Part shown: in pieces, positions 12,501-45,984 of the stretch
Layout of the letters: every line of letters begins with the position of its first letter
Position numbering within the stretch: position 1 is the stretch's first letter
Source of the DNA: Macrostomum lignano
Taxonomy: Eukaryota
Length of the DNA stretch: 64,000 nucleotides
Assembly: GCA_002269645.1 (NCBI GenBank)
Contig: NIVC01000102.1
Span: forward strand, 910,951 to 974,950
Direction of reading: 5' to 3'
The notes under the pieces: generated by a model
What the model was told of the DNA's origin: nothing
Databases searched by the model: none
Seen by the model: the letters and a program-made list of their open reading frames with translations, nothing else
Made by a program: the position numbers and the translations under genes

Positions 12501-15500
12501 TGTCTCAACTGAATGTGTCCTCACTGTCTCAACTGAATGTGTCCTCACTGTCTCAATTGAATGTGTCCACTGTCTCAATTGAATGTGTCCACTGTCTCAA
12601 TTGAATGTGTCCACTGTCTCAATTGAATGTGTCCACTGTCTCAATTGAATGTGTCCACTGTCTCAATTAAATGTGTCCACTGTCTCAATTGAATGTGTCC
12701 TCACTGTCTCAATTGAATGTGTCCACTGTCTCAATTGAATGTGTCCACTGTCTCAATTGAATGTGTCCACTGTCTCAATTAAATGTGTCCACTGTCTCAA
12801 TTGAATGTGTCCTCACTGTCTCAATTGAATGTGTCCACTGTCTCAATTGAATGTGTCCACTGTCTCAATTGAATGTGTCCACTGTCTCAATTGAATGTGT
12901 CCACTGTCTCAATTGAATGTGTCCACTGTCTCAATTGAATGTGTCCACTGTCTCAATTGAATGTGTCCACTGTCTCAATTGAATGTGTCCACTGTCTCAA
13001 TTGAATGTGTCCTCACTGTCTCAATTGAATGTGTCCACTGTCTCAATTGAATGTGTCCACTGTCTCAATTGAATGTGTCCACTGTCTCAATTAAATGTGT
13101 CCACTGTCTCAATTGAATGTGTCCTCACTGTCTCAATTGAATGTGTCCTCACTGTCTCAATTGAATGTGTCCACTGTCTCAATTGAATGTGTCCACTGTC
13201 TCAATTAAATGTGTCCACTGTCTCAATTGAATGTGTCCTCACTGTCTCAATTGAATGTGTCCACTGTCTCAATTGAATGTGTCCACTGTCTCAATTGAAT
13301 GTGTCCACTGTCTCAATTGAATGTGTCCACTGTCTCAATTGAATGTGTCCACTGTCTCAATTGAATGTGTCCTCACTGTCTCAATTGAATGTTTCCACTG
13401 TCTCAATTGAATGTGTCCACTGTCTCAATTGAATGTGTCCACTGTCTCAATTAAATGTGTCCACTGTCTCAAGTGAATGTGTCCTCACTGTCTCAATTGA
13501 ATGTGTCCACTGTCTCAATTGAATGTGTCCACTGTCTCAATTGAATGTGTCCACTGTCTCAATTAAATGTGTCCACTGTCTCAATTGAATGTGTCCTCAC
13601 TGTCTCAATTGAATGTGTCCACTGTCTCAATTGAATGTGTCCACTGTCTCAATTGAATGTGTCCACTGTCTCAATTGAATGTGTCCACTGTCTCAATTGA
13701 ATGTGTCCACTGTCTCAATTGAATGTGTCCTCACTGTCTCAATTGAATGTGTCCACTGTCTCAATTGAATGTGTCCACTGTCTCAATTAAATGTGCCCAC
13801 TGTCTCAATTGAATGTGTCCTCACTGTCTCAATTGAATGTGTCCACTGTCTCAATTGAATGTGTCCACTGTCTCAATTAAATGTGTCCACTGTCTCAATT
13901 AAATGTGTCCACTGTCTCAATTAAATGTGTCCACTGTCTCAATTAAATGTGTCCACTGTCTCAATTAAATGTGTCCACTGTCTCAATTAAATGTGTCCAC
14001 TGTCTCAATTAAATGTGTCCACTGTCTCAATTAAATGTGCCCACTGTCTCAGCCATCACTTTAGCCACCCACGGGAAATTTGCAGCAAAAAAATTATTTC
14101 CAAAAGAATAATTCAGTCAGGTCAGTCAAAGATTTGCGATAAACATTAATCCATAGCACACCCAGGATCAGGCGGCCCCGCCCCCGTCAGTCTCCAGACA
14201 CACTCAACTCTGCCCATAACGACCCCGAAGCTTAGGTTAGGGAGCTAAACTTCGCATGAGCGAGCAGAGAGAGAGAGAAAATTCTCGAAACTCGCTCAAA
14301 TCCTCTAAGCAGGCAAATTTATTCAAATCTCATTTCGCACAGATAATACAGTAATACGGCAATATATGTATAGATATAATATTTATAAGCCATGCATAAT
14401 GCTGATGCAAAATAGTTGCTTCTGTGTGATTGGCTGCTGAAATTATGAGATAAAATAAAAAGCCAGCTAACGAGATTGCACATACTCACTGAATCACAAA
14501 ACCTCAAGAAATCCCAACAATCAGTTCTAGATCCCAACAATCAGTCCCAAATCCCAACAATCAGTTCTAGATCCCAACAATCAGTCCCAGATCCCAACAA
14601 CCAGTCCCAAATCCCAACAATCAGTTCTAGATCCCAACAATCAGTCCCAGATCCCAACAATCAGTCCCAAATCCCAACAACCAGTCCCAAATCCCAACAA
14701 TCAGTTCTAGATCCCAACAATCAGTCCCAGATCCCAACAAGCAGTCCCAAATCCCAACAACCAGTCCCAAATCCCAACAATCAGTTCTAGATCCTAACAA
14801 TCAGTCCCAGATCCCAACAAGCAGTCCCAGATCTCAACAGTTAGTCCCAGATCCCAATAGTTAGTCCCAGATCCCAATAGTCAGTCCCAGATTTCAACAG
14901 TTAGTCCCAGATCTCAACAGTTAGTCCCAGATCTCAACAGTTAGTCCCAGATCTCAACAGTTAGTCCCAGATCCCAACAGTTAGTCCCAGACCCCAATAG
15001 TCAGTCCCAGATCCCAACAATCAGTCCCAGATCCCAATAGTCAGTCCCAGATCCCAGCAACTCACCCTCATTCCAAACCGGAGTTCGGTTATGCAGCTCC
15101 ATCAGATGCGACATCTCCCTCCGTTTCAGCCTCTCAACCAGCCCCTCCTCCTCAGAATTCGGTCTGATGTCCACCCTGACGCAGTCACCCTCCTCAGCCT
15201 CCAACATCGCTGGCAGGACCACAGTCATTTTCCTGGGGCCGCGAAATCCCAGCACGTTAGTCTCGTAGGTGATCCCAGCCAGCTCCCTCCTACCAGCCTC
15301 CGGTGACTTGGCCGCAGTGAGCTTCTTCGGCGACAATCCTGAATCAAACACGGTGAACGCTGTCCCAAGAAAATTTGCTCTCAACTTTCCAACGTAGCCC
15401 TCGCCGCGTCGACTTAAATCGGTGGGATCGCAGGAGATCAAGTAGTTTGATGTTGACGAACGTTTGCGCTTTCTGGCAGCCAGCAAGAAGCTTCGTTTGC

Positions 15501-18500
15501 CATCGTCGCGTTCCAGATGCAGATAGTAGGTCGGGTAGCGGGACCCGTCCATGCCGCGGGAGTGTCGGCTGATGCGACACTTCAGCGATCCGGCCGCGTC
15601 TCTGCCCGCTGGTTGAAGGGCGAAGTCGCCCAGATCCGGGATGTCGGTCTGGTGAAAAGGCTGAAGCCGTAGCGACTGCGGGTTGGTGGGCAGATAGGGG
15701 GAGGTTTGTTTGAAGTTTGAGCACTGCATTGGAATCTGTGCTGTAAGAGTGTGCGGCTGAGTCTGTTTTTATTGCTGACTGGCAAAATTACTGCTCAGAA
15801 GTTTTTCTGACCGCTTTTAAAAATTTCTATATACTTTTCTTATCTGCGTCTGTCTACTGCAATCGTTCTCTTCTCTTGTTATCTACCTACATTCTCGTTT
15901 CTACCCCTCCTCTCTATCTACCCCTCCTCTCTATCTACCCCTCCTCTCTATCTACCCCTCCTCTCTATCTACCCCTCCTCTCTATCTACCCCTCCTCTCT
16001 ATCTACCCCTCCTCTCTATCTACCCCTCCTCTCTATCTACCCCTCCTCCTCTCTATCTACCCCTCCTCTCTATCTATCCCTCCTCTCTATCTACCCCTCC
16101 TCTCTCTATCTACCCCTCCTCTCTATCTACCCCTCCTCTCTATCTACCCCTCCTCTCTCTATCTATCCCTCCTCTCTATCTACCCCTCCTCTCTCTATCT
16201 ACCCCTCCTCCTCTCTATCTACCCCTCCTCCTCTCTATCTACCCCTCCTCCTCTCTATCTACCCCTCCTCCTCTCTATCTACCCCTCCTTGCCTATCTAC
16301 CCCTCCTCTCTATCTACCCCTCCTCTCTCTATCTACCCCTCCTCTCTCTATCTACCCCTCCTCTCTATCTACCCCTCCTCTCTATCTATCCCTCCTCTCT
16401 ATCTACCCCTCCTCTCTCTATCTACCCCTCCTCTCTCTATCTACCCCTCCTCTCTATCTACCCCTCCTCTCTATCTACTTCTCGTCTCTATCTACCCCTC
16501 CTCCTCTCTATCTACCCCTCCTCTCTATCTACCCCTCCTCTCTATCTACCCCTCCTCTCTATCTACCCCTCCTCCTCTCTATCTACCCCTCCTCTCTCTA
16601 TCTACCCCTCCTCTCTCTATCTACCCCTCCTCCTCTCTATCTACCCCTCCTCTCTATCTACCCCTCCTCTCTATCTATCCCTCCTCTCTATCTACCCCTC
16701 CTCTCTATCTACCCCTCCTCTCTATCTACTCCTCCTCTCTATCTACCCCTCGTCTCTATCTACCCCTCCTCTCTATCTACCCCTCCTCTCTATCTACCCC
16801 TCCTCTCTATCTACCCCTCCTCTCTATCTACCCCTCCTCCTCTCTATCTACCCTCCTCCTCTCTATCTACCCCTCCTCCTCTCTATCTACCCCTCCTCCT
16901 CTCTATCTACCCTCCTCCTCTCTATCTACCCCTCTCCTCTCTATCTACCCCTCCTCCTCTCTATCTACCCCTCCTCCTCTCTATCTACCCCTCTCCTCTC
17001 TATCTACCCCTCCTCCTCTCTATCTACCCCTCCTCCTCTCTATCTACCCCTCCTCCTCTCTATCTACCCTCCTCCTCTCTATCTACCCCTCCTCCTCTCT
17101 ATCTACCCCTCCTCCTCTCTATCTACCCCTCCTCCTCTCTATCTACCCCTCCTCCTCTCTATCTACCCCTCTCCTCTCTATCTACCCCTCCTCCTCTCTA
17201 TCTACCCCTCCTCCTCTCTATCTACCCCTCCTCCTCTCTATCTACCCTCCTCCTCTCTATCTACCCCTCCTCCTCTCTATCTACCCTCCTCCTCTCTATC
17301 TACCCCTCCTCTCTATCTACCCCTCCCCTCTCTATCGCTCTTCTCTCTCAATCTAACCCTCTCCTCTCTCTCTTTATCTACCTTTCTTATCTCTATCTAG
17401 GCCTCTCTTCTTTCTCTAGCTACCTCTTTTATCTAACTATCTACCTTTCTATCTACTTAATCAGTAGTTATCCGTCCCACTTTTTCCGCTCAATCGCAGG
17501 ACCAAGAAAAGATGTTAGATTTCAGTTAACATATCTAGCTAGTCTCTGCAGCAGTCTCTCACACTCAAGCCAGTACTGCAGTGCCTTCACAGCTGCCACC
17601 AGCATCAAGCAGGCAAACAGTTAGCAAACAGAAGATAGAGAAAAAATATTAGGTACAAAGTATGCCACCAATTAAGGTTGATCAAGTTAAGCTGTAAACA
17701 TAATCTACAAATGTTAAGCCTTCATAGTGATAAATTTTGAAAATTTCATTTCCTATAGCTTATTAAGATAAGTCGTTGAATTAGATTGTACTTATTTACC
17801 TCTTTATATAATGTATACAAAATAGTTAGAATTTGTTAGAATGTTAGGGAACGCAAAGTAAGTGAAGTAATATGAGAACTAAATTAGAAAATTTTGATTA
17901 TAAACAACATCAGGGGCGTCGCCACCAAGGGGGGGGGGAGACAGGGGGCACATCTGCCACCAGCCCCCCAGTAAAAGCTATGGGGGGGACATGGCAATGC
18001 TTTGTTCCCCCCCACTTCACCTTATGACCCGTTGTGTAAAGCAATAATTTTGTTTCAGGGCGCTAAAATGAGTGCCTGCGGCGCTAAAATGAGTGCCTGC
18101 GGCGCTAAAATGAGTGCCTGCGGCGCTAAAATGACTGCCTGCGACGCTAAAATGAGTTCCTGCGGCGCTAAAATGAGTGCCTGCGGCGCTAAAATGAGTG
18201 CCTGCGGCGCTAAAATGAGTGCCTGCGGCGCTAAAATGACTGCCTGCGACGCTAAAATGAGTTCCTGCGGCGCTAAAATGAGTGCCTGCGGCGCTAAAAT
18301 GAGTGCCTGCGGCGCTAAAATGAGTGCCTCTTGCGCTAAAATGACTGCCTGCGGCGCTTAAATGAGTGCCTCTTGCGCTAAATTGACTGCCTGCGGCGCT
18401 AAAATGACTGCCTGCGGCGCTAAAATGAGTGCCTGCGGCGCTAAAATGAGTGCCTGCGGCGCTAAAATGAGTGCCTGCGGCGCTTAAATGAGTGCCGGCG

Positions 18501-21500
18501 GCGCTAAAATGAGTGCCTGCGGCGCTAAAATGACTGCCTGCGGCGCTAAAAATGAGTGCCTGTGGCGCTAAACTGAGTGTCTGCGGCGCTATAATGAGCG
18601 CTGACAACACCGATCTTAAAAAAATTTACATGTAGAAATTTAGTCATGTACATGTACATGTAAAATTCATTGCTTTGTCCCCCCACCATAAAATCCATGG
18701 CGACGACCCGGAACACCACTAAACTTGGGCTATTTTAGTTACTATATATAAAAATGAAAAGAAACTCCACGAAAGCAAAAGTTTCAAGTTAAAAAGTTAA
18801 ACACGACACCTTATTTAGCGACGTGAGGGAAGCAGAAGGTAGTCTGTGTGCGCGATTAAAAAATCAGAGTAAAGTGACACAAAGACATCAACTAGGAAGA
18901 GACCTCAATATTGCTGGCATCGTTCACTACCGCTGAATCTTCATTGTGCAGCTCCAACAGCTGCTGGGAGCGGTTTTTTCTGCCGTGGTGGACGTCTTCA
19001 GCTTGCGGCGTCTCTTGTGAGCCAGCTTAGGTGCGGTTGCGCAGCTCATTGGGCGGCTGCTACTGCTGCTTTTGTTTTGCTTCCTTTAGCTGCTCCTGCT
19101 GCTCCCGGTGCTCATTCTGCTGTTCATTTTGCTGCTCCTGGTGCTCATTCTGCTGCTTTTGCCGATTTTGCTGCTCCTGATGCTTATTCTGCTGCTTTTG
19201 CTGCTTTTGCCGTTTTTGCTGCTCTGATGCTAATTCTGCTGCTTTTGCTGCTTTTGCCATTTTTGCTGCTCTGATGCTCATTCTGCTGCTTTGCTACTTT
19301 TGCCATTTTTGCTGCTCCTGATGCTCAGTCTGCTGCTTTTGCCGTTTTTGCTGCTTTTGATGCTCATTCTGCTGCTTTGCTGCGTTTGCCGTTTTTGCTG
19401 CTTCTGGTGCTCGTTCTGCTGCTTTGCTGCTTTTGCCGTTTTTGCTGCTTCTGGTGCTCATTCTGGTGCTTTTGCTGCTTCTGGTGCTCATTCTGCTGCT
19501 TTTGCTGCTCCTGGTGCTCATTCTGCTGCTTTTGCTGCTTTTGTTGTTTTTGCTGCTCTGATGCTCATTCTGCTGCTTTGCTGCTTCTGCCATTTTTTGC
19601 CACCTACCTCTCTTCTATAACTATATACCTCTCTTATCTCTTATCTACCTCTCTTCTTCCTGCTCATTCTCTTTCATTCTACCTCTCTTCTCTTTCGCCC
19701 AAAAATGCTTAAAATTTAGTTGATATATTTATTTTGCTGCTCCTACCGCCCATTCTGCTGCTTTTAGTGCTGGTTGTGCTGCTTCTGCTGCTGCTCTTGC
19801 TGCTTTTGCTTCTGCTGTTCATTTTGTTGCTCATTCTGCTGCTCTTGCTGCTTTTGCTTCTGCTGTTCATTTTGTTGCTCATTCTGCTGCTCTTGCTGCT
19901 TCTGCTGCTCATTTAGTTGCTCTTGCTGCTTCTGCTGCTTATTCTGCTGCTCTTGCTGCTTCTGCTGCTCATTCTGCTGCTCATTCAGTTGCTCTTGCTG
20001 CTTCTGATGCTCATTCTGCTGCTCTTTTTGCTCATTTTGCTGCTTCAGCTGCTCTTGCTGCTTCTGCTGCTCTTGCTGTTTCTGCTGCTCTTGCTGTTTC
20101 TGCTGCTCATTCGGTTGCTTTTGCTGCTTCTGCTGCTCATTCGGTTGCTTTTGCTGCTTCTGCTGCTCATTCTGCTGCTCATTCAGTTGCTCTTGCTGCT
20201 TCTGCTGCTCATTCTGCTGCTCTTGTTGCTCATTTTGCTGCTTCTGCTGCTCTTGTTGCTCATTTTGCTGCTTCTGCTGCTCTTGTTGCTCATTTTGCTG
20301 CTTCTGCTGCTCTTGTTGCTCATTTTGCTGCTTCTGCTGCTCTTGTTGCTCATTTTTCTGCTTCTGCTGCTCTTGTTGCTCATTTTGCTGCTTCTGCTGC
20401 TCTTGTTGCTCATTTTGCTGCTTCTGCTGCTCTTGTTGCTCATTTTGCTGCTTCTGCTGCTCTTGTTGCTCATTTTGCTGCTTCTGCTGCTCATTTTGTC
20501 GCTCATTCTGCTGCTTCTGCTGCTCATTTTGTCGCTCATTCTGCTGCTCATGCTGCTTCTGCTGCTCTTGCTGCTCACTCTGCTGATCCCGCTGCTGCAC
20601 AACAATCCATTTTGTCTTGCCTGGCACTCTATTTTCAGCATTCACCTCCAGCAACTGCTGCTCGCGCAGAAAATCCGCACGGGTGGAAGTTTTTAACTTG
20701 CAGCGTCTCATGTGCGCCATCTTGGCCAGATTGCCCGACTCACTCACCGGCATTCTGCTCTGCCGCACCGATGACTGCTCATGCTTTAAAGTTTTGTAAG
20801 AAATGAAAGTCTGTTTATGAAGTGTTCCGTTTATTGAATTCATTGACTAAGATGGTTCGTACGCTAATTGAATCACAACATTGACCTCAAAATTTACTGG
20901 TACCCCTGACCCACTACACCCGACCCTGACCCACTACACCCGACCCTGACCCACTAGACCCGACCCTGACCCACTACACCCGACCTTGACCCCCTACACC
21001 CGACCCTGACCCACTACACCCGACCCTGACCCACTACACCCGACCCTGACCCACTACACCCGACCCTGACCCACTACACCCAACGCTGACTTACTACACC
21101 CGACCCTGACCCAGTAGACCCGACTCTGACCCACTAGACCCGACCCTGTCCCACTACACCCGACCCTGTCCCACTACACCCGACCCTGTCCCACTACACC
21201 CGACCCTGACCCACTACACCCGACCCTGACCCACTACACCCGACCCTGTCCCACTACACCCGACCCTGTCCCACTACACCCGACCCTGACCCACTACACC
21301 CGACCCTGACCCACTAAACCCAACCCTGACCCACAATCAAGTAACTAACAAACTTAGCCAGTGAAATATTTACACGCAAGCATAAATCAATATAAACACA
21401 AGAAGCACTAATAGAGGCTTTCAATCTAAATAAAGATTTTCAACTCCAATATAACAAAATACATTCATTTTTCACTATCGAAATTCTAGATAGTCATTCA

Positions 21501-23400
21501 TGCAGTCAAGCAGATAAAACAAGAGTTGCTACAAATGTTGAAACAAAAAACTATACTTTAAGCATACTATACATGCAATCTTAGATTCGGGCTTTGAAGT
21601 TTTGAATTGTGAAGATTCGAATTTGTGAATAGTCGAATTTGTGAATAGTTGAGTTTGTGAATAGTCAAATTTGTGAATAGTTGAGCTTGTGAATAGTCAA
21701 ATTCGTGAATAGTCGACTTTGTGAATAGTCGAATTTGTGAATAGTCGAATTTGTGAATAGTCAAGTTTGTGAATAGTCTAATTTGTGAATATTCATATTT
21801 GTGAATAGTCAAGTTTGTGAATAGTCAAGTTTGTGAATAGTCGAGTTTTTGAAGAGTCGAGTTTGTGAATATTTAAGTTTTCATATTTGAGGTTGTGAAT
21901 AATCTAATTAGTGAATATTCGAATTTATGGACTTTCAAGTTTGTGTGAAGATTCGAGCTTTGCATAATGCCCCTACCGGAGTACACAGACAGGCAATTAT
22001 TAAAGTGAGCTCACACTTCTCGGAGTTCCATTCGCACTGCTAGCATTTGAGCTGCTGAGCATTCGATGCTGCGGACTGTTAAAGTTGCTGTCAGCACCGC
22101 TAAGTGCTGGCTTGTTGATGACGCTGTTTGAGCAGGAAGCTGCATTAGGGCTGGTGGAAAGCTCCAGTGAGCTCATTTTCGCTGCCACGGCTTCCAGTTG
22201 GTGCGTTGGCGATGGACCGTCAGGATTTTGAAATGCTTGGGGACCGTCGTAGGCTGGAAGGCGATAATGGGGATTTGGGAAGTTTAGTTTTCTGATTGCG
22301 TAATCACTGCTGATGGCTCGGATAGGAAATTGGGATCAGGGAGATTTAATTAAAGAGGATATTGGGAATGAGGGAGACTGTGTTGAAGTGGTGAGGAAAG
22401 GGGAGTAGAGAGATAAGGAAAGGTGAGTAAAGAGATGGGAAAAGCGATTAGAGAGATGGAGAAAGGCGATTAGAGAGATGGGGAAAGGGGATTAGAAAGA
22501 TAGGAAAGGGGATTAGAGAGATGGGGAAAGGGGATTAGAGAGATGGGGAAAGGGGAAGAGATTAGAGAGATGGTAAACGGGTTTATGAAGATGAAGAAAG
22601 GGGAATAGAGAGATAGGGAAAGGAGATTAGAGCGATAAAGAAAGGGGAAGGAATTAGAGAGGTGGGGAAACGGGTTTTGAAGATGGAGAAAGGGGATTAG
22701 AGAGATGGGGAAGGGGACTAGAGGGAAGGGGAAGGGAATTAGAAGGATTAGGTAAGGGGATTAGAGAGATGGATGGAAAAGAAATGAGGGATAAGGGACA
22801 TCGAATATGGGATTTGGGATATCAAACAGGAGATTAGGGATATCGAATAGAGGATTAGGTATGTCGAATAGGGGATTAAAGATATCTAAAAGGGGATTAG
22901 AGAAACCTAATGGATAGATTAGCAATCCACTATGATTACTAGTAGGATGATTATATAAGCGATAGATTAGCAATCCATTCTAATTATTAGTAGGATTATT
23001 ATTATATATAATTCCTAGATAAGGCCTAGGAAGATTACAGCAACAAGATAGTGAACTAAAGACAGGAGAAGAAAAATGGTAATTGGAGTAAAACAACAAA
23101 TTCTCACCAAAGTGGCAAGCCCGCTCTCCAGCATTCAGGCCCAGAATCGGCAATAGCAGAGGCGACCTTTCGTTCTCTTTGCCAGCCGTGGCGCTGCCGG
23201 GGCGCGAGCCCTGCATGCTGGCAGCGGAGCTGTTGCGCTGAACAATTGCTGTAGACATTGCGATACGTTTCTGTGCTTTCTGCTGGGCCAGGTCGAGCTG
23301 ACGCTGATTGAGCTGCTGCCTCAGCTGGGGGTCTGACATGTCACTGATCTGGGATTTGCTACTGCTGGGCAGCTCAGGAGTTCGGATTTGAGGGAGTGGA
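9548..23400 (-). CDS. TUB: Tubby/TULP family protein (king-tubby-like). Exons: about 23400-23108, 22253-22015, 20783-20744, 15740-15066, 10751-10668, 9681-9548
   Basis: The N-terminal Tubby-type segment is [21 protein letters not shown], followed by a spliced CHF|AYDGP motif. The Tubby domain runs [24 protein letters not shown]...FLLAARKRK...[14 protein letters not shown]...PVWNE|[22 protein letters not shown]|...[39 protein letters not shown]. All introns are GT-AG with matching phases. The first acceptor and start codon are unresolved. Confidence 0.93.
9860..10640. repeat. Composite intronic minisatellite built from GGTCATT / AGTT / AACTCATGAA modules
   Basis: Directly visible; fills the last Tubby intron. 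Confidence 0.9.
11108..14050. repeat. About 2.9-kb satellite of 22/24-bp units (ACTGTCTCAATTGAATGTGTCC[TC])
   Basis: Period 22 (12841, 12863), with a 24-bp variant carrying an extra TC; lies in a Tubby intron. Confidence 0.97.
14510..15058. repeat. 20-bp minisatellite (TCAGTCCCAGATCCCAACAA)n abutting a Tubby splice donor
   Basis: Directly visible; it ends next to the donor at 15065. Confidence 0.92.
15890..17340. repeat. About 1.45-kb pyrimidine-rich minisatellite (TCTATCTACCCCTCCTC)n, variable length
   Basis: Directly visible; it produces the spurious 582-aa and 355-aa ORFs. Confidence 0.95.
17911..18711. mobile_element. hAT-like non-autonomous element with an internal 21-bp tandem array
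   Basis: The left end CAGGGGCGTCGCCA matches the reverse complement of the right end (CCGGGTCGTCGCCA) at 12/14 positions. The flanks AACAACAT and AACACCAC match at 6/8, consistent with a degenerate 8-bp TSD. Confidence 0.6.
18058..18600. repeat. 21-bp minisatellite (GGCGCTAAAATGAGTGCCTGC)n
   Basis: Directly visible; translates as CGAKMSA repeats. Confidence 0.95.
19050..20590 (-). repeat. CAG/CAA-rich low-complexity tract (Q/E/N/K codons on the minus strand), interrupted at about 19600-19740
   Basis: Higher-order units such as [10 protein letters not shown] are visible in ORF 19764..20843. Confidence 0.9.
19764..20783 (-). CDS. Candidate Gln-rich alternative terminal exon of the Tubby gene
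   Basis: The frame is open from the phase-0 acceptor at 20784 to a stop at 19764, with AATAAA on the minus strand at 19733-19728. It may instead be an incidental repeat ORF. Confidence 0.4.
   Translation of the reverse strand, partial: HEQSSVRQSRMPVSESGNLAKMAHMRRCKLKTSTRADFLREQQLLEVNAENRVPGKTKWIVVQQRDQQSEQQEQQKQHEQQNERQNEQQKQQNERQNEQQKQQNEQQEQQKQQNEQQEQQKQQNEQQEQQKQQNEQQEQQKQKNEQQEQQKQQNEQQEQQKQQNEQQEQQKQQNEQQEQQKQQNEQQEQQNEQQKQQEQLNEQQNEQQKQQKQPNEQQKQQKQPNEQQKQQEQQKQQEQQKQQEQLKQQNEQKEQQNEHQKQQEQLNEQQNEQQKQQEQQNKQQKQQEQLNEQQKQQEQQNEQQNEQQKQKQQEQQNEQQNEQQKQKQQEQQQKQHNQH
20905..21335. repeat. 20-bp minisatellite (CCCTGACCCACTACACCCGA)n
   Basis: Directly visible. Confidence 0.95.
21610..21950. 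repeat. 16-bp minisatellite (TTTGTGAATAGTCGAA)n
   Basis: Directly visible, degenerate. Confidence 0.85.
22400..22900. repeat. Purine-rich repeat (GGGATTAGAGAGATGGGGAAA)-like
   Basis: Directly visible in the Tubby intron 23107-22254. Confidence 0.8.
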
Positions 23401-23877: not shown

Positions 23878-24075
23878 AATTGCGCCGACTCTCCAAGGAC
23901 TGGGGGGGTCGCCAGACACAGCCTCAATTACCCCAGCTAATGCTGGCACCCATTTTACAGCTGGGTGGACTGAAGCAATGCAGAGTTAAGTGTTTTGCAC
24001 AAGGACACAAATTGTTCCAGTGGGATCGGGAATCGAACCCCCGGCCTTCAAGTCGTGATTCTAAGCCTCCATGAG
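23878..24075 (-). mobile_element. tRNA-headed SINE with a CORE-like central domain
   Basis: The minus strand has a Pol III B-box GGTTCGATTCC (24039-24029), followed by GTGTCCTTGTGCAAAACACTTAACTCTGC...CAGCTGTAAAATGGG, which resembles the MIR/CORE block. A second copy lies at 36880-37010. Confidence 0.65.
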
Positions 24076-33588: not shown

Positions 33589-33829
33589 TGACCTCAAATT
33601 CACTTTAAACCAACCAAAACTAATGCAGCAAAGAGTTATTATTTACTGATAGTTTGGTTTCTGCCGAAGCCGGTATGGGGCAGATTTTTATGGCTGATAT
33701 CACTGAGGTCATTGCTCTCCTATCTTCCTCGGCCACTGGTAGTTACGCTCGTTTATTGACTCGGTTTTTACTGAATTGCATGCTCGTAAAAAAGCATAAT
33801 TGTTACTGGCGACTTTGATTCAAAGATCT

Positions 33830-35210
33830 TTGACCCACTTGATCCCTGACCCACTTGATCCCTGACCCACTTGATCCCTGACTGACCCACTTGATCCCTG
33901 ACTGATCCTCTTGATCCCTGACTCTCTTGATCCCTGACCCTCTTGATCCCTGACTGACCCACTTGATCCCTGAATGACCCACTTGATCCCTGAATGACAC
34001 ACTTGATCCCTGACCCTCTTTATCCCTGACTGACCCTCTTGATTCCTGACTGACCCTCTTGATCCCTGACTGACCCTCTTGATCCCTGACCCTCTTGATC
34101 CCTGACTGACCCTCTTGATCCCTAACCCTCTTGATCCCTGACTGACCCTCTTGATCCCTGACCCTCTTGATCCCTGACTGACCCTCTTGATCCCTGACCC
34201 TCTTGATCCCTGACTGACCCTCTTGATCCCTGACCCTCTTGATCCCTGACCCTCTTGATCCCTGACCCTCTTGATCCCTGACCCTCTTGATCCCTGACTG
34301 ACCCTCTTGATCCCTGACCCACTTGATCCCTGACTGATCCTCTTGATCCCTGACCCTCTTGATCCCTAACCCTCTTGATACCTGACTGACCCACTTGATC
34401 CCTAACCCTCTTGATCCCTGACCCTCTTGATCCCTGACTGACCCACTTGATCTCTGAATGACCCACTTGATCCCTAACCCTCTTGATCCCTGACTGACCC
34501 ACTTGATCCCTGAATGACCCACTTGATCCCTAACCCTCTTGATCCCTGACTGACCCTCTTGATCCCTGACCCTTTTGATCCCTGACTGACCCTCTTGATC
34601 CCTGATCCACTTGATCCCTGACCCACTTGATCCCCGACCCACTTGATCCCTGACCCACTTGATCCCTGACCCACTTGACCCCTGACCCACTCGATCCCTG
34701 ACCCACTTGATCCCTGACCCACTCGATCCCTGACCCACTTGATCCCTGACCCACTTGACCCCTGACCCACTTGATCCCCGACCCACTTGATCCCTGACCC
34801 ACTTGATCCCTGACCCACTTGACCCCTGACCCACTCGATCCCTGACCCACTTGATCCCTGACCCACTCGATCCCTGACCCACTTGATCCCTGACCCACTT
34901 GACCCCTGACCCACTCGATCCCTGACCCACTTGATCCCTGACCCACTCGATCCCTGACCCACTTGATGCCTGACCCACTCGATCCCTGACCCACTTGATC
35001 CCTGACCCACTCGATCCCTGACCCACTTGATGCCTGACCCACTCGATCCCTGACCCACTTGATCCCTGACCCACTCGATCCCTGACCCACTCGATCCCTG
35101 ACCCACTTGATCCCTGACCCACCCGATCCCTGACCCGCTTGACCCCTGACCCACCCGATCCCTGACCCACTTGATCCCTGACCCACCCGATCCCTGACCC
35201 GCTTGACCTA
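33830..35210. repeat. 16/20-bp minisatellite (CACTTGATCCCTGACC)n
   Basis: Directly visible; it explains the GS-rich ORFs 33803..35233 and others. Confidence 0.95.
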
Positions 35211-35699
35211 GACTCAATCGATATTTCCAACAAGATCAGCTGCTGTGCGGCAGGAATTCTGACTGTTTATTTCAACATGACTACTTTTCATTAATTAGTT
35301 AACAATCATTCATTGTTGGCACGATTATAAAACTGTTTTCAAATCTTTTTAAAAAAATTACTCTAATCTTCTCTGGTGAGTGCAGTTTACTCAATATTTA
35401 TGCAAAGATTTAATTTCCGTACTTGTATCCAAAATCCAAAAAATTAATCGTAACTCATGTTTTGACTGGATTGAATTGAGTTAAAATACTTTTTGACACT
35501 TTAACCAAAGTTTTAATGTTAATTTGCTTAATGCTCTACTGTAAAGCACTTTAATTGCATTTTTCTATCATTTTGAAAAAAGCATGAAATATAACGGCTC
35601 GCATTGGGATGGATAGTTGTGTTTATCCGATGAAATTGGCTGGAACAGGTAATTCAGTCTGAAATCTGTAATTAACTATGATAGCTTTTGCTTTTCCAT

Positions 35700-36020
35700 G
35701 TGTCAGATGAGGTACAGCAAGTACAGGTAAGATGTGTCAGATGAGGTGCAGCAAGTACAGGTAAGATGTGTCAGATGAGGTGCAGCAAGTACAGGTAAGA
35801 TGTTTCAGATGAGGTGCAGCAAGTACAGGTAAGATGTGTCAGATGAGGTGCAGCAAGTACAGGTAAGATGTTTCAGATGAAGTGCAGTAAGTACAGGTAA
35901 GATGTGTCAGATGAGGTGCAGTAAGTACAGTTAAGATGTGTCAGATGAGGTACAGCAAGTACAGGTAAGATGTGTCAGATGAAGTGCAGTTAGTACAGGT
36001 GAGATGTGTCAGATGAGACG
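35700..36020. repeat. 34-bp minisatellite (GATGTGTCAGATGAGGTGCAGCAAGTACAGGTAA)n
   Basis: Period 34 (35701, 35735, etc.). Confidence 0.93.
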
Positions 36021-36281
36021 TAATTGCACTGAAATTAGGAGCAATTATCGATTTACCGTTTATGTAGCGAGAGACGTGTCGGATGCATTCAAACAAAAAT
36101 TTTCACTCTGCATATATTTCCACAAAATCGCATGCACAGGTGAACAGTGTCACAGGTAAAAGTACTTTAAAATTCGCTAACCTTGCATGCAACTTTTCAA
36201 TAATCTAGAGATTTATTAGTAAGCGATTCAGATTGCTTGTACGTTGTCCATGTTATTGACTCCACACAACATTGAGCACAA

Positions 36282-39208
36282 CTATCCAGCTCGCTCTTCA
36301 TAGCCAGAGTCCACAGCTTCAACCGTGCGATTAACAGATCTGGAAGCGTCGACGCACATCAAACAAGCCGGCACAATCATGGCCATCATGATGACCAGGA
36401 TAGCCACATAGGTCATGGTCGAGGCCAGCTCAGAGTCCTTTAGTGGCAGTGGCAAGTGGCAAGTGGCAAGCATGAACAGGAGTAAAAGGGCAAACACAAA
36501 CAATAAGCCCAAAATTTCAATCTTAGCAAAGAAATAAATCCCCAAAATGCTGCCCCGAATCCGACGGGCCGCTCGCTTCCGCATTGCTGCCTCAAGGAAC
36601 GCCTCAGACACCGCGCGGAATCCGCGGCGTCTCGACCGCTTTGCCAGCGAGATCAGCAGCGACAGGGAGAAACAGGTGAGCAACTTCACCAAGCTTGAAT
36701 TTGCTGCCGGTTCTTCATCAGCTCTCCCATCGAGACAGTCGGGATCTGCTACGGTAGAAGCCAGGGCTTGCACAGTCCTTTGTGAGCTTTTTTCAGCCAG
36801 TGATGGCTGTAAAGCATTGGGTAAATGATAGTTGCTAGGCTAGGTATTACAACACTCACACTCAATTTAAATTTTACCCGTTTTACAGCTGGGAGAACGG
36901 AAGCAATGCAAGAGTTTTAAGTGTCTTGCTCAAGGACACAGATTTTTTCCGATTGGGTCGAGAATCGAACCCCCGCCTCCGATCTTTCAATCGCGTACAA
37001 CCTCTTGCAAATGTATAGTTTCATAATCTTTATTTGGTTTGCTGTGACTATAGAGCAGATACTATCTCCTACACAAATACATCTTACCATGGGGTTCTGC
37101 CTACAACCAAATGTTCAATATAATAGTAAATACCATTCGAATTTCGTGGACCTTAGTGACAAGCCCAATGGGTTGATTTGTTGTCAACCTCTCTTAGCAA
37201 AGATGTTACTTTGATGTTACCTGCTACTCAAATTACAGAGATTTTTTAACTGGACCTGGTGGGTGGAGTCAAGGTACCTGTAAGTACAGAACTAACTGGC
37301 ACAAATTTTGAAATTTCCGCAAAACAGGATCACTTACCAATCGCTGCATCAGCTCTTCAGCCTTCTGTCTCGTCTCCTGATGGCCGCAAACTAATGTCCG
37401 ATGCTTGTGAATCAGTCGGACAAGAATTTCGTCATCATTGCAAAGTTCCAGCGTCACAAGCAGCTCCTGAACGTCAAGTCTGGCGCGTCGAAGGTTGTCT
37501 TCGAACCAAAGCTCCAAGTCGACGTCGTAGTCTAACCAGATGCTCAGGTTTTTGAGCAGCGCATCAAAGTTCACATAGTACCAGTCAAACTGACCAGAGC
37601 TCAGCGAGACAAAATCTTTTAACCTGTCTGGCAGGAAGTCGAAAGCCAAAGGCTTGTCAGATTGAATCAGGAGCTTCCAAATGGAGCTGACCCCTTCCAA
37701 GTGCTCCCACACCGCCAGTTCCGCATCTGCATCAGTCACTTGCTCACGCAAGCGGGGCAGAACTCGGCTAACCTGATGATATCGACACGAGTGCAGCACC
37801 CTTCGCGCTGCGTACAGCTTGCCGAACTTCAAGTAAATCAACGCAATCAGCGAATATTTTGCAGAGCGAGCGTACTCCGGAATTCTCCTCGCCAACTTCA
37901 GCATCTCGTGTTTGTCCTCCAGCAGGCAGCGTCCGAGATTGAGCTTCAATAAAATTGACCGGATCGCATCGTAGACGTCGTGGAACTGCAGCCTGGAAGA
38001 CAGCGGCACGGGCCTCGGGTTCAGGATTGGCAGCACCAGGAACGGGTGAAAATTAAAAATTTTGTCCTGCACTAAAGGCGACAGAACTCTTTCGTATTGC
38101 GAGACAATTTCTGGGAGATGATCGACTACGTTACGTACCGCGAGCGCAATGGCTTCCTTCTCATCGTGATGTTTCTTCAGATAAACCCAAGCGTCTTTGA
38201 GAAAGAAGTGTCTCATGCATTTACGCGGATCTGGTGTGTCTCTCAATGAGTTCAACAGCATGAGCAGTGCCCTTCTCGCTAACTGGATTAGAAGGCTACT
38301 GTGCCAGTCCACTGCGGGCGTTTCACCCAGCAGCTGGAAGATCAGAGTCTTGGCAATGTAGGTCTTCAGTCCACTCACGCGAGCTGCAATCACCTTCTTA
38401 ATGATGAACTTGATGAGCAGGAACACGTGTCCCTGTTCGATTGTGAGGCTTCTGAGCAGCCTTCGCTCCAGAAAGGTGGTGCTGACCCTCAGCTGTTGTC
38501 CGTCCTTGCCAGGTGGAGCCGCCGACACCAGGTGACAGGGAGACTCCAGCATCTCCTGCCTCAGGCTCTGCAGCACTGATGGAGCAATGCAAGTTTTGTA
38601 CCCTGGCTGCAGCACCTCGATTCTTGGATAGCAACAGCAGCGGAAGGTCCAAACCAGATCCACTGCCGGTCTCTCGTCAGATCCGGCCCACCGCTGCGAC
38701 GGATTTGAAGCTGCAGTGAAGGTTTTAGGCATTCGTTATGCAAACTCTCTGGCAACGCTAAACCGAAAATATTGTAAATTTGCTTACGCGATTCGCCCCA
38801 TTTGACGTGACCGTTCTCATACTCCACTTCAGCGTGACGTTCTCCAAAAAATGAACAGTTGATGCAGCTGCAGCTGCCTTTGATATGAAACAGCATGCCT
38901 ATCGCTATGAGGCAGACGTCGATGTCGGAGTCTGCGTCAGTTTGACCGTCCAGTCGAACCAGGCTGTTGGACCAGCCGTCACTGTAGCTCCCGACGATGT
39001 ACACTTGGTAGTCCTTGTACTCATCTGCGTCCAGTCGCTTTCTAACAATATGCTGCAAAGCATCCGAGCACGCAGATTGCAGCTTGACTCGGTTCAGAAC
39101 AAAACCGCAATCTTTCAGTGCTTTGTGCAGCTTAGTGCTGCTCTCTTGACACGCTGGGAAGCCGTCGTCTTCTGGTTCGACTTCGATTAGATGCTCGTCG
39201 TCGCGCAT
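36282..39208 (-). CDS. Mab-21/cGAS-like nucleotidyltransferase (cGLR) with C-terminal hydrophobic helices; exons 39208-38788, 38710-37338, 36806-36282; 772 aa
   Basis: The NTase motif is VGSYSDGWSNSL...DADSDIDV, with a third acidic position in PAVDLVWTF. The Mab-21 C-terminal lobe reads LRVSTTFLERRLL...FLLIKFIIKK...LKTYIAKTLIF...W...LLNSL...MRHFFL. Introns are GTAAGC..CAG (77 bp, phase 1) and GTAAGT..CAG (531 bp, phase 0). The total is 2319 nt, in frame. Confidence 0.88.
36880..37010 (-). mobile_element. Second, degenerate copy of the tRNA/CORE-like SINE, inside cGLR intron 2
   Basis: It shares TTTTACAGCTGGG...GAAGCAATGCA...TTAAGTG.CTTGC.CAAGGACAC...GAATCGAACCCC with 23950-24045. Confidence 0.65.
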
Positions 39209-39253
39209 GCTGTCAGCTTCCTGCTCGCTTCTGTGAAACAGGAAATCGGCATT

Positions 39254-40204
39254 TCAAAAATGATTAACATAAATTTGAGTCAAACAAGATTTACGAGCTC
39301 CCAACCTCTCATCGAATGCAGACGACCTGAGCGACAGTCTATGAGCTCGAGGTTCAATGATAAGACGATCATAAATCAGCTGCTGCAGCCGTCTATTTGC
39401 TCCTTCGTGCCGGATTCCGAGCTCTCTGGCGTGAGTCGCATGCTTGAGCAGCAGCTGCAAGACCTCGCGATGTCCGAAGCGACAGGCGATGGCAGCGGGG
39501 CTGAGCCCGTCTTTGTTGAGGTCGCCGAGCCCGCAGCCGAGCTGCAGCAGAGTCTGGGCAGCGGCCTCGTGCCCCATCGCTGCCGCAGCGTGCAGCGTCG
39601 TCGACCCGTCGCAGGCCAGCGAGTCGGCGGCGACTCCCGCCCGGACGAGCAGCTCAATGGCGGCCCGCTGGCCGTGGAGAGCCGCGGAGTGCAGCGGGGT
39701 CTGGCCACGCGCATTCCTGGCGCTCGGATCCGCGGCTGCCAGCAGCAGAGCAGCGAGCACGAGCTGCTGCCTGAGCTGAGCAGCCAGGTGCACCGGCGAG
39801 TCTCCGTCTGCGAGCTGCTGGTCGCAGTCGGCCTGCCGGCTCAGCAGCTGCACGACTTCGAGGTGGCCGTTTCGCGAGGCGAGGTGCAGCGCCGAGGAGC
39901 TGGACTTCGTCACCAGGCTGGTGTCGGCCTCGGACTCGAGCAGCAGCCGGACCGCATCCCGGTGACCGTGCATCGAGGCCAGGTGCAGAGCGGTCGCCCC
40001 GCTGCTGTCCTGAGCGTCCAGCTGAGCTCCGGCCTCGATGAGAAGCCTCGCCACCCTGGACTGGCCTCGCTCGGCTGCCCAGTGCAGCGCCGTCCGCTGC
40101 CGGTCGTCAGCGACGTCCGGACTGACGCTGCTCCGTAGAAACTGCCGCACCTTGCCGACTCTGCCGTCCATGGCGGCGCTCTTCAGCTCCGGGAGCAGGT
40201 TCAT
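39254..40204 (-). CDS. Ankyrin-repeat protein (about 8 repeats, 316 aa if standalone); possibly the first exon of the cGLR gene
   Basis: Repeats include TALHWAAERGQ, TALHLASMHGH, SALHLASRNGH, SPVHLAAQLRQ, TPLHSAALHGQ, TTLHAAAAMGH and SPAAIACRFGH. The first ATG is at 40204; the ORF track starts at a TTG. Confidence 0.9.
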   Translation of the reverse strand: MNLLPELKSAAMDGRVGKVRQFLRSSVSPDVADDRQRTALHWAAERGQSRVARLLIEAGAQLDAQDSSGATALHLASMHGHRDAVRLLLESEADTSLVTKSSSSALHLASRNGHLEVVQLLSRQADCDQQLADGDSPVHLAAQLRQQLVLAALLLAAADPSARNARGQTPLHSAALHGQRAAIELLVRAGVAADSLACDGSTTLHAAAAMGHEAAAQTLLQLGCGLGDLNKDGLSPAAIACRFGHREVLQLLLKHATHARELGIRHEGANRRLQQLIYDRLIIEPRAHRLSLRSSAFDERLGARKSCLTQIYVNHF

Positions 40205-40957: not shown

Positions 40958-41593
40958 CTACTCATAGTAGAGTGCATGAAGAGTAGCGTGGCCTCTGGCC
41001 GTTGGCCCCGCCACCTCCGCCTCGATGCAATTGTCGGCGCATTCGCCAGGCGACCAGAGCGCTCTGCTGGCAAGACAGGCTCCGCCGGCATCGCCCGGGT
41101 TCTTCGGGCACTGCAGCAGCAGGACGAACACGACGAACTTGTACCGCTCAAAGCCGGCCTCCTTCACTCGGTTCCGGATCATCTGGGAGATGTCGCAGGC
41201 TCTGCGGCCGGCGGTTGCGGGGTCGTACTGGTAGCTGGCCAGGGCCTCCGTCAGGGTGTCGGTCAGAATCGGCTTGAGTCGGAAGCCGCGGAGGCGCTCC
41301 TCCTGTTTGGGCTGCATCCGGTAGGTGTTTTCCAGGCGGATTTCCTGCGCCTTGCTCCGACGGCTATTGGCAAGGTTGCCCAGCGACATCAGGGCGGTCC
41401 GGCCCAGCAGGCCGCCAACAATCGAGCGCCGAGGTCCGAGAGCTCCGGACGTCATGGTTCCGCGACGTCCGGTGACCGGCGGCTGCGAGTTTGACGACGC
41501 CGTGGCAGCGGAAGGCTTCCCGGTGCCCACAGAACCGACTGTCTGCATTGGTGGCAGGGTGTCCTCGTTGCTCTCCGGCTCGCGGTCTGCCAT
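40958..41593 (-). CDS. Tctex1-domain dynein light chain (TCTEX1D1/DYNLT5-like), single exon, 211 aa
   Basis: It reads LENTYRMQP...L...L.SYQYDP...ACDISQMIRNRVKE.GFERYKFVVFV...SRALWS...DN...A..HALYYE, which is the Tctex-1 fold with a low-complexity N-terminal extension. Confidence 0.9.
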   Translation of the reverse strand: MADREPESNEDTLPPMQTVGSVGTGKPSAATASSNSQPPVTGRRGTMTSGALGPRRSIVGGLLGRTALMSLGNLANSRRSKAQEIRLENTYRMQPKQEERLRGFRLKPILTDTLTEALASYQYDPATAGRRACDISQMIRNRVKEAGFERYKFVVFVLLLQCPKNPGDAGGACLASRALWSPGECADNCIEAEVAGPTARGHATLHALYYE

Positions 41594-44699: not shown

Positions 44700-45545
44700 A
44701 GTTGGTCAGGTTGGTCAGGAATTAGTGGGGTCGGTCAGAATTTGGTCAGATGAGTCAAGATTTCGTCAGATAAGTCATAAGTTTATCGGATAGGTCAGGA
44801 GTTGTTGGTCAGAAAGGTCAGTCAGGAGTTGGTCAGAAAGGTCAGTCAGGAGTTGGTCAGAGAGGTCAGTCAGGAGTTGGTCAGATAGGTCAGTCAGGAG
44901 TTGGTCAGAAAGGTCAGTCAGGAGTTGGTCAAATACGCACGTAGAATACTGAAAATATAAAAATCAAAGATAGGTCAGTCAGGAGTTGGTCAGTTAGGTC
45001 AGTCAGGAATTAGTCAGAGAGGTCAGTCAGGAGTTGGTCAGATAGGTCAGTCAGGAGTTGGTCAGAAAGGTCAGTCAGGAGTTGGTCAGATAGGTCAGTC
45101 AGGAGTTGGTCAGATAGGTCAGTCAGGAGTTGGTCAGATAGGTCAGTCAGGAGTTGGTCAGATAGGTCAGTCAGGAGTTGGTCAGAAAGGTCAGTCAGGA
45201 GTTGGTCAGAGAGGTCAGTCAGGAGTTGGTCAGATAGGTCAGTCAGGAGTTGATCAGATAGGTCAGTCAGGAGTTGATCAGATAGGTCAGTCAGGAGTTG
45301 GTCAGAAAGGTCAGTCAGGAGTTGGTCAGAAAGGTCAGTCAGGAGTTGGTCAGAGAGGTCAGTCAGGAGTTGGTCAGAGAGGTCAGTCAGGAGTTGGTCA
45401 GATAGGTCAGTCAGGAGTTGGTCAGAAAGGTCAGTCAGGAGTTGGTCAGATAGGTCAGTCAGGAGTTGGTCAGATAGGTCAGTCAGGAGTTGGTCAAAGA
45501 GGTCAGTCAGGAGTTGGTCAGATAGGTCAGTCAGGAGTTGGTTAA
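44700..45545. repeat. 24-bp minisatellite (GGTCAGTCAGGAGTTGGTCAGATA)n
   Basis: Directly visible; translates as LLTDLSDQ repeats on the minus strand. Confidence 0.95.
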
Positions 45546-45984
45546 ATACGCTCGTAGAATACTGAAAAATTAAAATGAAAGAATATAATTTAGAGTGTTT
45601 ATTAGTAGTATATCCACGGAGATTATACTCGTACGTTAGTAAATTCAATCGAAGAAAATATTTTACACGAATTTTAATGCTTTCTTCAAAAGTTGTTTTG
45701 TTTAATTGTAACCAATAACCCAACCTGCCTTCTCGTTCTACTGCTGACAAACAAATCGACATGAAGTCAATATTTTATAATTTTTGTAAATTTAATGCTC
45801 GTTTGTTTTGGTGTTTCTACAAGTAGACATTTCTGTGATATGGCATCCCAGTATTTGACTCTGTTGACGGCAAAAAACTGTAATGATCAAAAGAATAAAC
45901 TACAGACGATTTTTAAATTATAAAATTTTGGCCATTTATTAAATTTAGCCATTTGACAACATATCTCCTGGTTTTATTCGACAT

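Follow-up and report, generated by a model that had tools for sequence, protein, structure and literature searches.

Can an enzyme of the cGAS-like family be bound to a membrane by a part of its own polypeptide? The cGAS-like receptors (cGLRs) are generally regarded as sensors of the cytosol that occur in soluble form, and for cGAS the site of ligand encounter and the localisation that prevents self-activation are an active question. The question is raised here by a gene of the flatworm Macrostomum lignano, which lies at 40204..36282 on the minus strand of a 64,000-nucleotide stretch of contig NIVC01000102.1 (the window; all positions below refer to it) and whose last exon encodes a hydrophobic tail behind a nucleotidyltransferase (NTase) core. 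Taken as a whole, the reading that the gene encodes a membrane-tailed member of a lineage-specific ankyrin/cGLR nucleotidyltransferase family of M. lignano has, in our judgement, a slightly better than even chance of being correct. What is new is the last exon. The family, its assignment to the cGLRs and the ankyrin fusion are not new, since they are contained in the survey of Li et al. 2023 (bioRxiv 10.1101/2023.02.22.529553; PMC9980059).

Gene structure and reading frame

The sequence-derived gene model comprises four exons on the minus strand and yields a product of 1079 amino acids (aa). Exon 1 (39306..40204) opens with the start codon at 40204-40202 (MNLLPELK...) and encodes about eight ankyrin repeats and the beginning of a disordered acidic linker. 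It is followed by a first intron of 75 nucleotides (nt) at 39231..39305 (GTTGGG...CACAG, phase 2) and by exon 2 (38788..39230), which contains the acidic linker and the N-lobe of the NTase. After the second intron (77 nt, 38711..38787, GTAAGC...TGCAG, phase 1), exon 3 (37338..38710) supplies the third catalytic Asp and the Mab-21 helical lobe, and then a C-terminal domain, about 200 aa long and specific to the family. The third intron (531 nt, 36807..37337, GTAAGT...TTACAG, phase 0) holds a repeat that resembles a short interspersed nuclear element (SINE), and exon 4 (36282..36806) encodes an orphan tail of 174 codons and ends with a TAG stop. An AATAAA polyadenylation signal is located at 36212..36217, 65 nt 3' of the stop codon.

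A previous interpretation, made from the sequence only, had proposed three phase-matched exons and a product of 772 aa. Its coordinates (39208..38788, 38710..37338 and 36806..36282) and phases proved exact, but 772 aa is a truncated version of the 1079-aa protein, as the exon 40204..39306 with its ankyrin repeats, about 300 aa at the N-terminus, had been overlooked. The ATG at 39208 corresponds to Met308 and is internal in the longer model; the frame is open from the acceptor TTTCACAG, followed by A, at 39231/39230 through this ATG. The ankyrin-encoding open reading frame (ORF) runs from 40261 to 39257 on the same strand and offers two phase-compatible donors. The donor after 39306 was chosen, and it yields the junction '...SSAFDERSEQEADSMRDDEH...', as in the database proteins P0001 and P0003. 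Removal of the 75-nt intron gives '...SSAFDERSEQEADSMRDD...', identical in P0001 and P0003, and removal of the 77-nt intron gives 'GESPSNPSQRWAGSDERPAVDLVW', which is present in P0003 and P0004. P0001 to P0004 all begin with the identical MNLLPELK sequence, and the ankyrin-to-core junction is common to P0001, P0003 and P0004. Furthermore, the junction of exons 3 and 4 is reproduced in the near-identical copies P0001 and P0002 and in a 68% identical paralogue (P0004, P0036). The 5' end of the model is plausible because the next family-matching ORF upstream on the same strand (40958-41593) is one of the Tctex-1 family.

Exon 4 is not a chance open frame. An uninterrupted run of 174 codons after the exon 4 acceptor occurred in just 5e-5 of the shuffles, and frame 0 shows the top codon-usage log-odds of the three frames, far above the values of the intron and of the 3' flank. 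Retention of the 531-nt intron would lead to a stop at 37271-37269, 23 codons into the intron, and thus to a soluble product. The assignment of exon 4 to a gene on the plus strand was considered and rejected; the plus strand there carries an ORF of 93 aa only.

Domain architecture and similarity to cGLRs

From N- to C-terminus the protein consists of about eight ankyrin repeats, the acidic disordered linker, the NTase core, the Mab-21 helical lobe, the family-specific C-terminal domain and the tail of 174 aa. The product of exon 1 matches the Pfam models Ank_2 (3.1e-44) and Ank (1.3e-35), and an AlphaFold2 (AF2) model of P0004, which is 95% identical in the ankyrin region, displays eight helix pairs. 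Ank domains are found in 20 of 24 family members. An in-phase exon places the roughly 300 aa of N-terminal ankyrin repeats on one polypeptide with the cGLR core, and the protein therefore has the known ANK-cGLR architecture. This part of the assignment is secure and was published before.

The catalytic residues are G380 and S381 (38992-38987), D402 and D404 (38926-38918) and D465 (38660-38658) in full-length numbering, with the spacing D402-I-D404-V, 58 residues, V-D465-L-V. VGSYSDG, DSDIDV and AVDLV are all present in the product, and the alignment shows the GS, DxD and third-Asp columns to be conserved throughout the family. Li et al. define cGLRs by the pattern [DE]h[DE]h X50-90 h[DE]h (PMC9980059), which the GS / DSDIDV / VDLV arrangement of this protein satisfies. 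The intact GS...DSDID and VDLV motifs claimed by the sequence-only reading were thus confirmed.

The relation to cGAS and the cGLRs was clearest at the level of the family. With a core profile of 12 sequences, this protein included, the 14 best matches in the PDB were cGAS entries (E 2e-4 to 1.6e-3), followed by Sp-cGLR1. HHalign comparison of the family profile with five mollusc cGLRs, taken from Table S3 of Li et al. (PMC9980059), gave a probability of 98.6% (E 5.7e-16) over 209 columns, with VDLV, the strand of the third Asp, paired with the mollusc IDIA strand. In the N-lobe, GSYSDGW...SDIDV was aligned to the mollusc GSKSEGF...SDMDM (GSxSEGF...SDxD) with a 10-aa insertion, and this alignment is weak (E 0.011). 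Among the 24 family members, 14 match PF20266 (Mab-21_C; best E 6.6e-8) and two match the MTPAP-like palm domain, and P0025 reaches 30.8 bits on the Pfam Mab-21 model, for which the cut-off is 24.1. An AF2 model of the ankyrin-free paralogue P0008 (41% identical) had a mean predicted local distance difference test score (pLDDT) of 85.3 and a predicted template modelling score (pTM) of 0.88. Its 41 best Foldseek matches all belong to the Mab-21 family, led by Cv-cGLR1 at 3e-6 and including cGAS, MB21D2, Sp-cGLR1, MAB21L1 and MiD51/49. For the P0004 model the Foldseek result was dominated by ankyrin and DARPin matches, with nothing on the core.

A bilobed NTase and Mab-21 fold is therefore found at the family level, and the gene very probably encodes a member of the cGLR family. 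The family profile, HHalign and the Foldseek search with P0008, which retrieved Cv-cGLR1 and cGAS, all agree with the earlier proposal of an invertebrate cGAS-like nucleotidyltransferase. The Mab-21 helical lobe that had been proposed along with it is supported by profile and structure, and in the Pfam matches of the paralogues, but not by direct Pfam and PDB sequence searches of this protein (see Discussion).

The likeness to the characterised enzymes Cv-cGLR1 (8gjw), Sp-cGLR1 (8gjy) and human and mouse cGAS comprises the Mab-21/NTase fold (Foldseek E 3e-6 to 4e-5, target TM-score about 0.5), the same active-site motif and spacing, and homology at the profile level. Nevertheless sequence identity to them amounts to 12-16% only. 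The family differs from them by the 10-aa insertion between GS and DxD, the additional C-terminal domain of about 200 aa and the ankyrin repeats, and this protein also by its predicted membrane tail.

The C-terminal domain that follows the Mab-21 lobe (residues ~700-905, 37338-37950) is common to all family members. It is built of helices and a few short strands, includes the conserved motifs FHPF and NFDALL, and has no match in Pfam. The Foldseek alignments, which span 350-415 columns of the 604-residue P0008 model, appear not to cover it.

The hydrophobic tail

The tail begins with an acidic spacer, which precedes a first hydrophobic segment, H1 (36692-36642, residues 944-960). An Arg-rich linker (36641-36549) with 13 K/R residues and a net charge of +10 leads to H2 (36548-36465, core 36515-36465, residues 1003-1021), and a loop of 18 aa with a net charge of -1 connects H2 to H3 (36413-36351, residues 1039-1057). 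The protein ends with 22 acidic residues after H3. Helices were scored by Kyte-Doolittle (KD) values and by Hessa-type sums; the protein-wide median of the sums is +19. H2 and H3 both reach a KD value of 2.86, with Hessa-type sums of -5.0 and -2.2, and both are predicted as inserting helices of about 19-21 residues, as expected of an integral membrane protein. H1, with KD 1.78, is weakly hydrophobic, and no insertion is predicted for it. Segments with KD >=2.8 occur at 0.23 per 1000 codons in a six-frame translation of the window; here two of them lie within 60 codons. In H3 the proportion of T at codon position 2 is 0.62, a signature of transmembrane-coding sequence, and there is no overall T-richness. 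Pfam and PADLOC searches gave no match for the tail, and neither another copy of it nor a paralogue was found in the 64-kb window.

These features suggest that the last exon encodes a hydrophobic tail with an H2/H3 hairpin rather than a classical tail anchor, which would be a single transmembrane helix at the extreme C-terminus. We regard the membrane hairpin as a reasonable prediction, a little more probable than its absence. Of the earlier description of this exon, the Arg-rich linker in front of H2 was found as proposed and all three hydrophobic stretches are present, although two are strong and the first is borderline; the proposed tail-anchored form did not hold in its classical sense, as two helices are predicted instead of one. 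Proteins inserted by the GET/TRC40 route share with this one a large cytosolic N-terminal domain, the lack of a signal peptide and a hydrophobic stretch close to the C-terminus, which here ends 22 aa before the stop. They differ from the two strong helices and one weak helix spread here over about 115 aa. A further comparison is offered by MiD49/MiD51 (MIEF2/MIEF1) of the mitochondrial outer membrane, in which a membrane-tethered Mab-21 fold likewise faces the cytosol (Foldseek E 3e-3 to 2e-2). The anchor of MiD proteins is single and N-terminal, and they do not act as nucleotidyltransferases, in contrast to the predicted C-terminal two-helix hairpin and the intact catalytic motif found here.

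Because the 1079-aa protein has no signal peptide, its ankyrin, enzyme and C-terminal domains would be placed on the cytosolic side of the membrane. H2 and H3 would insert as a hairpin, with the Arg-rich stretch and the short C-terminus at the cytosolic face, an arrangement in which the linker charge of +10 and the loop charge of -1 fit the positive-inside rule. Judged by the charge distribution, the simplest topology would leave both ends of the hairpin in the cytosol, together with the N-terminus of about 900 aa, and H1 would be peripheral. The tail could thereby tether a ligand-activated, putative nucleotide-second-messenger enzyme to an organelle or to the plasma membrane, and the ankyrin repeats may act as a protein- or ligand-binding module.

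Conservation of the tail among relatives

Over 101 residues, P0036 shares 47% identity (z ~19.6) with residues 907-1013, a section that takes in H1, the linker and the start of H2. P0036 is a merged gene model that incorporates the 68% paralogue, and its equivalent of H1 is strongly hydrophobic (KD 2.53). P0004, the other model of this paralogue, stops just before H1, and its ending resembles that of P0036 after a frameshift. P0001 and P0002, which represent copies of the locus studied here, are both truncated after H1. The alignments point to conservation, as protein, of the junction between exons 3 and 4 and of the first ~100 tail residues in two diverged paralogues. Among the family members examined, H2 and H3 are so far unique to this locus. 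Of the paralogues examined for a similar tail, the 68% paralogue P0036 has the H1 and linker region, and none has H2/H3. If P0036 keeps its membrane affinity by means of a different helix, this would imply selection for membrane localisation.

For 55 members the match extends to the core end, and among these a hydrophobic tail was seen only in P0001/P0002 and in the merged model P0044. P0044 as a transmembrane-bearing member was discarded, as it is merged with a Delta-like gene, and so was P0127, which is merged with a Pecanex gene. A homologue search with the tail as query returned no matches and also missed P0001 and P0002, with which the tail shares about 80 identical residues; its outcome is therefore uninformative about absence. 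Strongly hydrophobic segments exist elsewhere in P0030 (residues 120-138, N-terminal to the ankyrin repeats) and in P0036 (residues 2750-2775, further downstream), and these could be further membrane-associated members or merged gene models.

A lineage-specific family

Homologues are almost confined to one species: 28 of 29 are Macrostomum lignano proteins, and the remaining one, P0018, is a protein from a metagenome contig. They are mostly annotated as ankyrin-repeat proteins only. When the matches of an exhaustive profile search were filtered again with a hidden Markov model (HMM) of the core alone, at least 104 members or clusters remained among the proteins retrieved. The raw count of 19,102 matches is inflated by generic ankyrin proteins, because the search profile had retained one ankyrin repeat. 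Nine of ten sampled members come from M. lignano and none from another named species. The family is a large lineage-specific expansion in M. lignano.

The models P0001, P0002 and P0003 contain many errors and represent near-identical copies of this locus; P0004 is a paralogue. Identity to the closest paralogue (P0004/P0036) is very uneven along the gene, with 95% for the ankyrin exon (39306-40204), 68% for the core (37338-39230) and 47% for the tail (36282-36806). Such a pattern points to gene conversion in the ankyrin exon, to an enzyme core that diversifies fast, or to a database model that is itself chimeric.

The cGLRs of M. lignano, among them fusions to ankyrin repeats, are part of the catalogue of Li et al., in whose Table S2 PAA accessions with Ank_2 domains at the N-terminus are given (PMC9980059); PAA is also the prefix of the M. 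lignano BOX15 proteins found here. Five M. lignano proteins that were purified for a biochemical screen appear in rows 89-93 of Table S3 (PMC9980059) and bear the signature of the family. The catalogued ANK-cGLRs agree with the gene described here in species, family, order of ankyrin repeats and cGLR core, and in the signature GSxSEGWGNSL...SDIDV...RPAVDxV...FHPF. The difference lies in the hydrophobic C-terminal tail, which among the family members examined is confined to near-identical copies of this locus, one 68% paralogue and a merged model. Transmembrane segments of cGLRs find no mention in the domain tables of Li et al. (PMC9980059).

Surroundings of the gene

The neighbouring ORFs with family matches, all on the minus strand, include a Tctex-1 dynein light chain ORF at 40958-41593 (6e-13), a Tub family ORF at 15001-15729 (8e-47) and an NAAA-beta ORF at 45010-45762 with a weak match (2.4e-7). 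All three appear unrelated to the cGLR gene.

The SINE-like repeat of the 531-nt intron is dispersed, with one copy at 36876-36975 and another at 23948-24043 that are about 83% identical. It carries a box resembling a tRNA T-arm, GGTTCGATTC, on the gene strand; ARAGORN and Rfam scans of the intron repeat revealed no tRNA or Rfam match. Directly 3' of the gene follow two satellite arrays, one of a 34-bp unit (x9.4, 35698-36017) and one of a 16-bp unit (x80.8, 33831-35206). A 476-aa 'ORF' at 33803-35233 was dismissed as a gene, as it consists of the 16-bp satellite only. A block densely filled with several kinds of minisatellite occupies 15906-17457, 18059-18598, 19127-20584, 20904-21334, 21607-21926 and 22395-22900. 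The GC skew of -0.76 at 16-18 kb is due to a CT-rich array of 17-20-bp units located there. Pfam gave no match for the long ORFs 15876-17624 and 19764-20843, which are probably artefacts of repeat sequence.

Discussion

Several observations weigh against a membrane-tailed cGLR. A direct Pfam search of this protein yielded no PF03281/PF20266 match (E<=1; E<=0.01), and a direct PDB sequence search yielded no match to cGAS. The lack of a direct Pfam match is read as divergence, because the profile and fold tests pass. The predicted structures are those of paralogues (68% and 41% identical) and not of this protein, and the annotation that provides the supporting gene models evidently contains frameshifts and wrongly fused genes. 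The Note column of Table S3 is empty for all five M. lignano relatives (PMC9980059), which we take to mean that no activity was reported for them. As to the tail itself, H2/H3 are not recognisable in P0036, the sole paralogue with a shared tail. The DNA of H2 is 50% T, so that its hydrophobicity is partly compositional, and a 7-bp microsatellite, AGTGGCA x4.3, lies at 36442-36470 within the coding sequence of the H2-H3 loop. The repeat unit is not a multiple of three, and slippage would therefore shift the frame of H3.

An alternative view of the tail holds that exon 4 ends in a hydrophobic extension of recent and possibly neutral origin, or that this end belongs to a minor isoform, and that the functional product is a soluble ANK-cGLR like the ~100 paralogues. 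H2 and H3 would then arise from the translation of T-rich, microsatellite-bearing sequence that came into frame recently. Such an origin would account for the T content of H2 and the coding (AGTGGCA)x4.3 repeat, for the lack of counterparts of H2/H3 in P0036, for the end of P0004 before H1, and for the finding that the only other hydrophobic C-terminal segment among the 55 members reaching the core end is that of the merged P0044. Neither Pfam nor PADLOC matches the tail, and the stop 23 codons into the 531-nt intron would yield the soluble isoform. Nevertheless a further 115 codons stay open past the conserved part (P ~0.009), frame 0 is still the top-scoring frame in the transmembrane part, and H3 displays its codon-position-2 signature of 0.62 without T-richness. 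A polyadenylation signal just 3' of the exon 4 stop and the hydrophobic helix retained by the paralogue elsewhere in its tail, which suggests that membrane affinity is a kept property, also argue against a neutral extension, which we hold to be rather unlikely. Unlikely, too, is a membrane-tethered pseudo-enzyme or scaffold, that is, a Mab-21-fold adaptor comparable to MiD49/MiD51 and MAB21L1 that makes no second messenger. MiD51, MiD49 and MAB21L1 are indeed among the structural matches; however, in both structure and profile comparisons it is active cGLRs and cGAS, and not MiD proteins, that come closest. Known non-catalytic Mab-21 proteins generally miss part of the GS / DxD / D motif, whereas the full motif is conserved throughout the expanded family. 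The five M. lignano relatives in the screen of Li et al., none with a Note entry (PMC9980059), would agree with an adaptor, but inactivity in a screen that lacked the right ligand is no evidence of inactivity.

The sequence-only reading had also considered a sensor-effector fusion, in which the tail would be a membrane-disrupting effector under control of the NTase, as in the operons of bacterial cyclic-oligonucleotide-based anti-phage signalling systems (CBASS). In these systems membrane-spanning helices work in concert with an NTase of the same superfamily, and the presence of an NTase and transmembrane helices on one polypeptide is what speaks for the idea here, and that alone. In CBASS, in contrast, a nucleotide-sensing domain is part of the effector, which is a protein of its own, and the tail contains no such domain. 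PADLOC gave no significant match for core or tail and hence no CD-NTase or effector, the only match of the core being to an unrelated family at E 0.051. Pfam has nothing for the tail and detected no SAVED, STING or other cyclic-nucleotide-binding domain between the enzyme and the helices. Conservation of the tail is poor, and a plain anchor would show the identical architecture. The fusion idea, for which the tail thus provides no match in either database, is highly improbable.

The membrane-tailed ANK-cGLR remains the explanation favoured here. Its strongest form, a membrane-integrated and catalytically active cGLR with a hairpin anchor, guided by its ankyrin repeats, in a phylum from which cGLR signalling is said to have largely disappeared, is doubtful as a complete statement. 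No report of a transmembrane-anchored cGLR was found in the literature searched, including the text supplements of Li et al. (PMC9980059). The practical weight of the finding is limited, as the tail is confined to one small subfamily and is poorly conserved. M. lignano is an exception among platyhelminths with its more than 100 ANK-cGLR clusters. If the prediction is true, a cGLR with its own membrane anchor would mean that evolution has hard-wired localisation into a member of this receptor class, and it would suggest that, in flatworms, the ligand lies near a membrane or the downstream receptor is bound to one.

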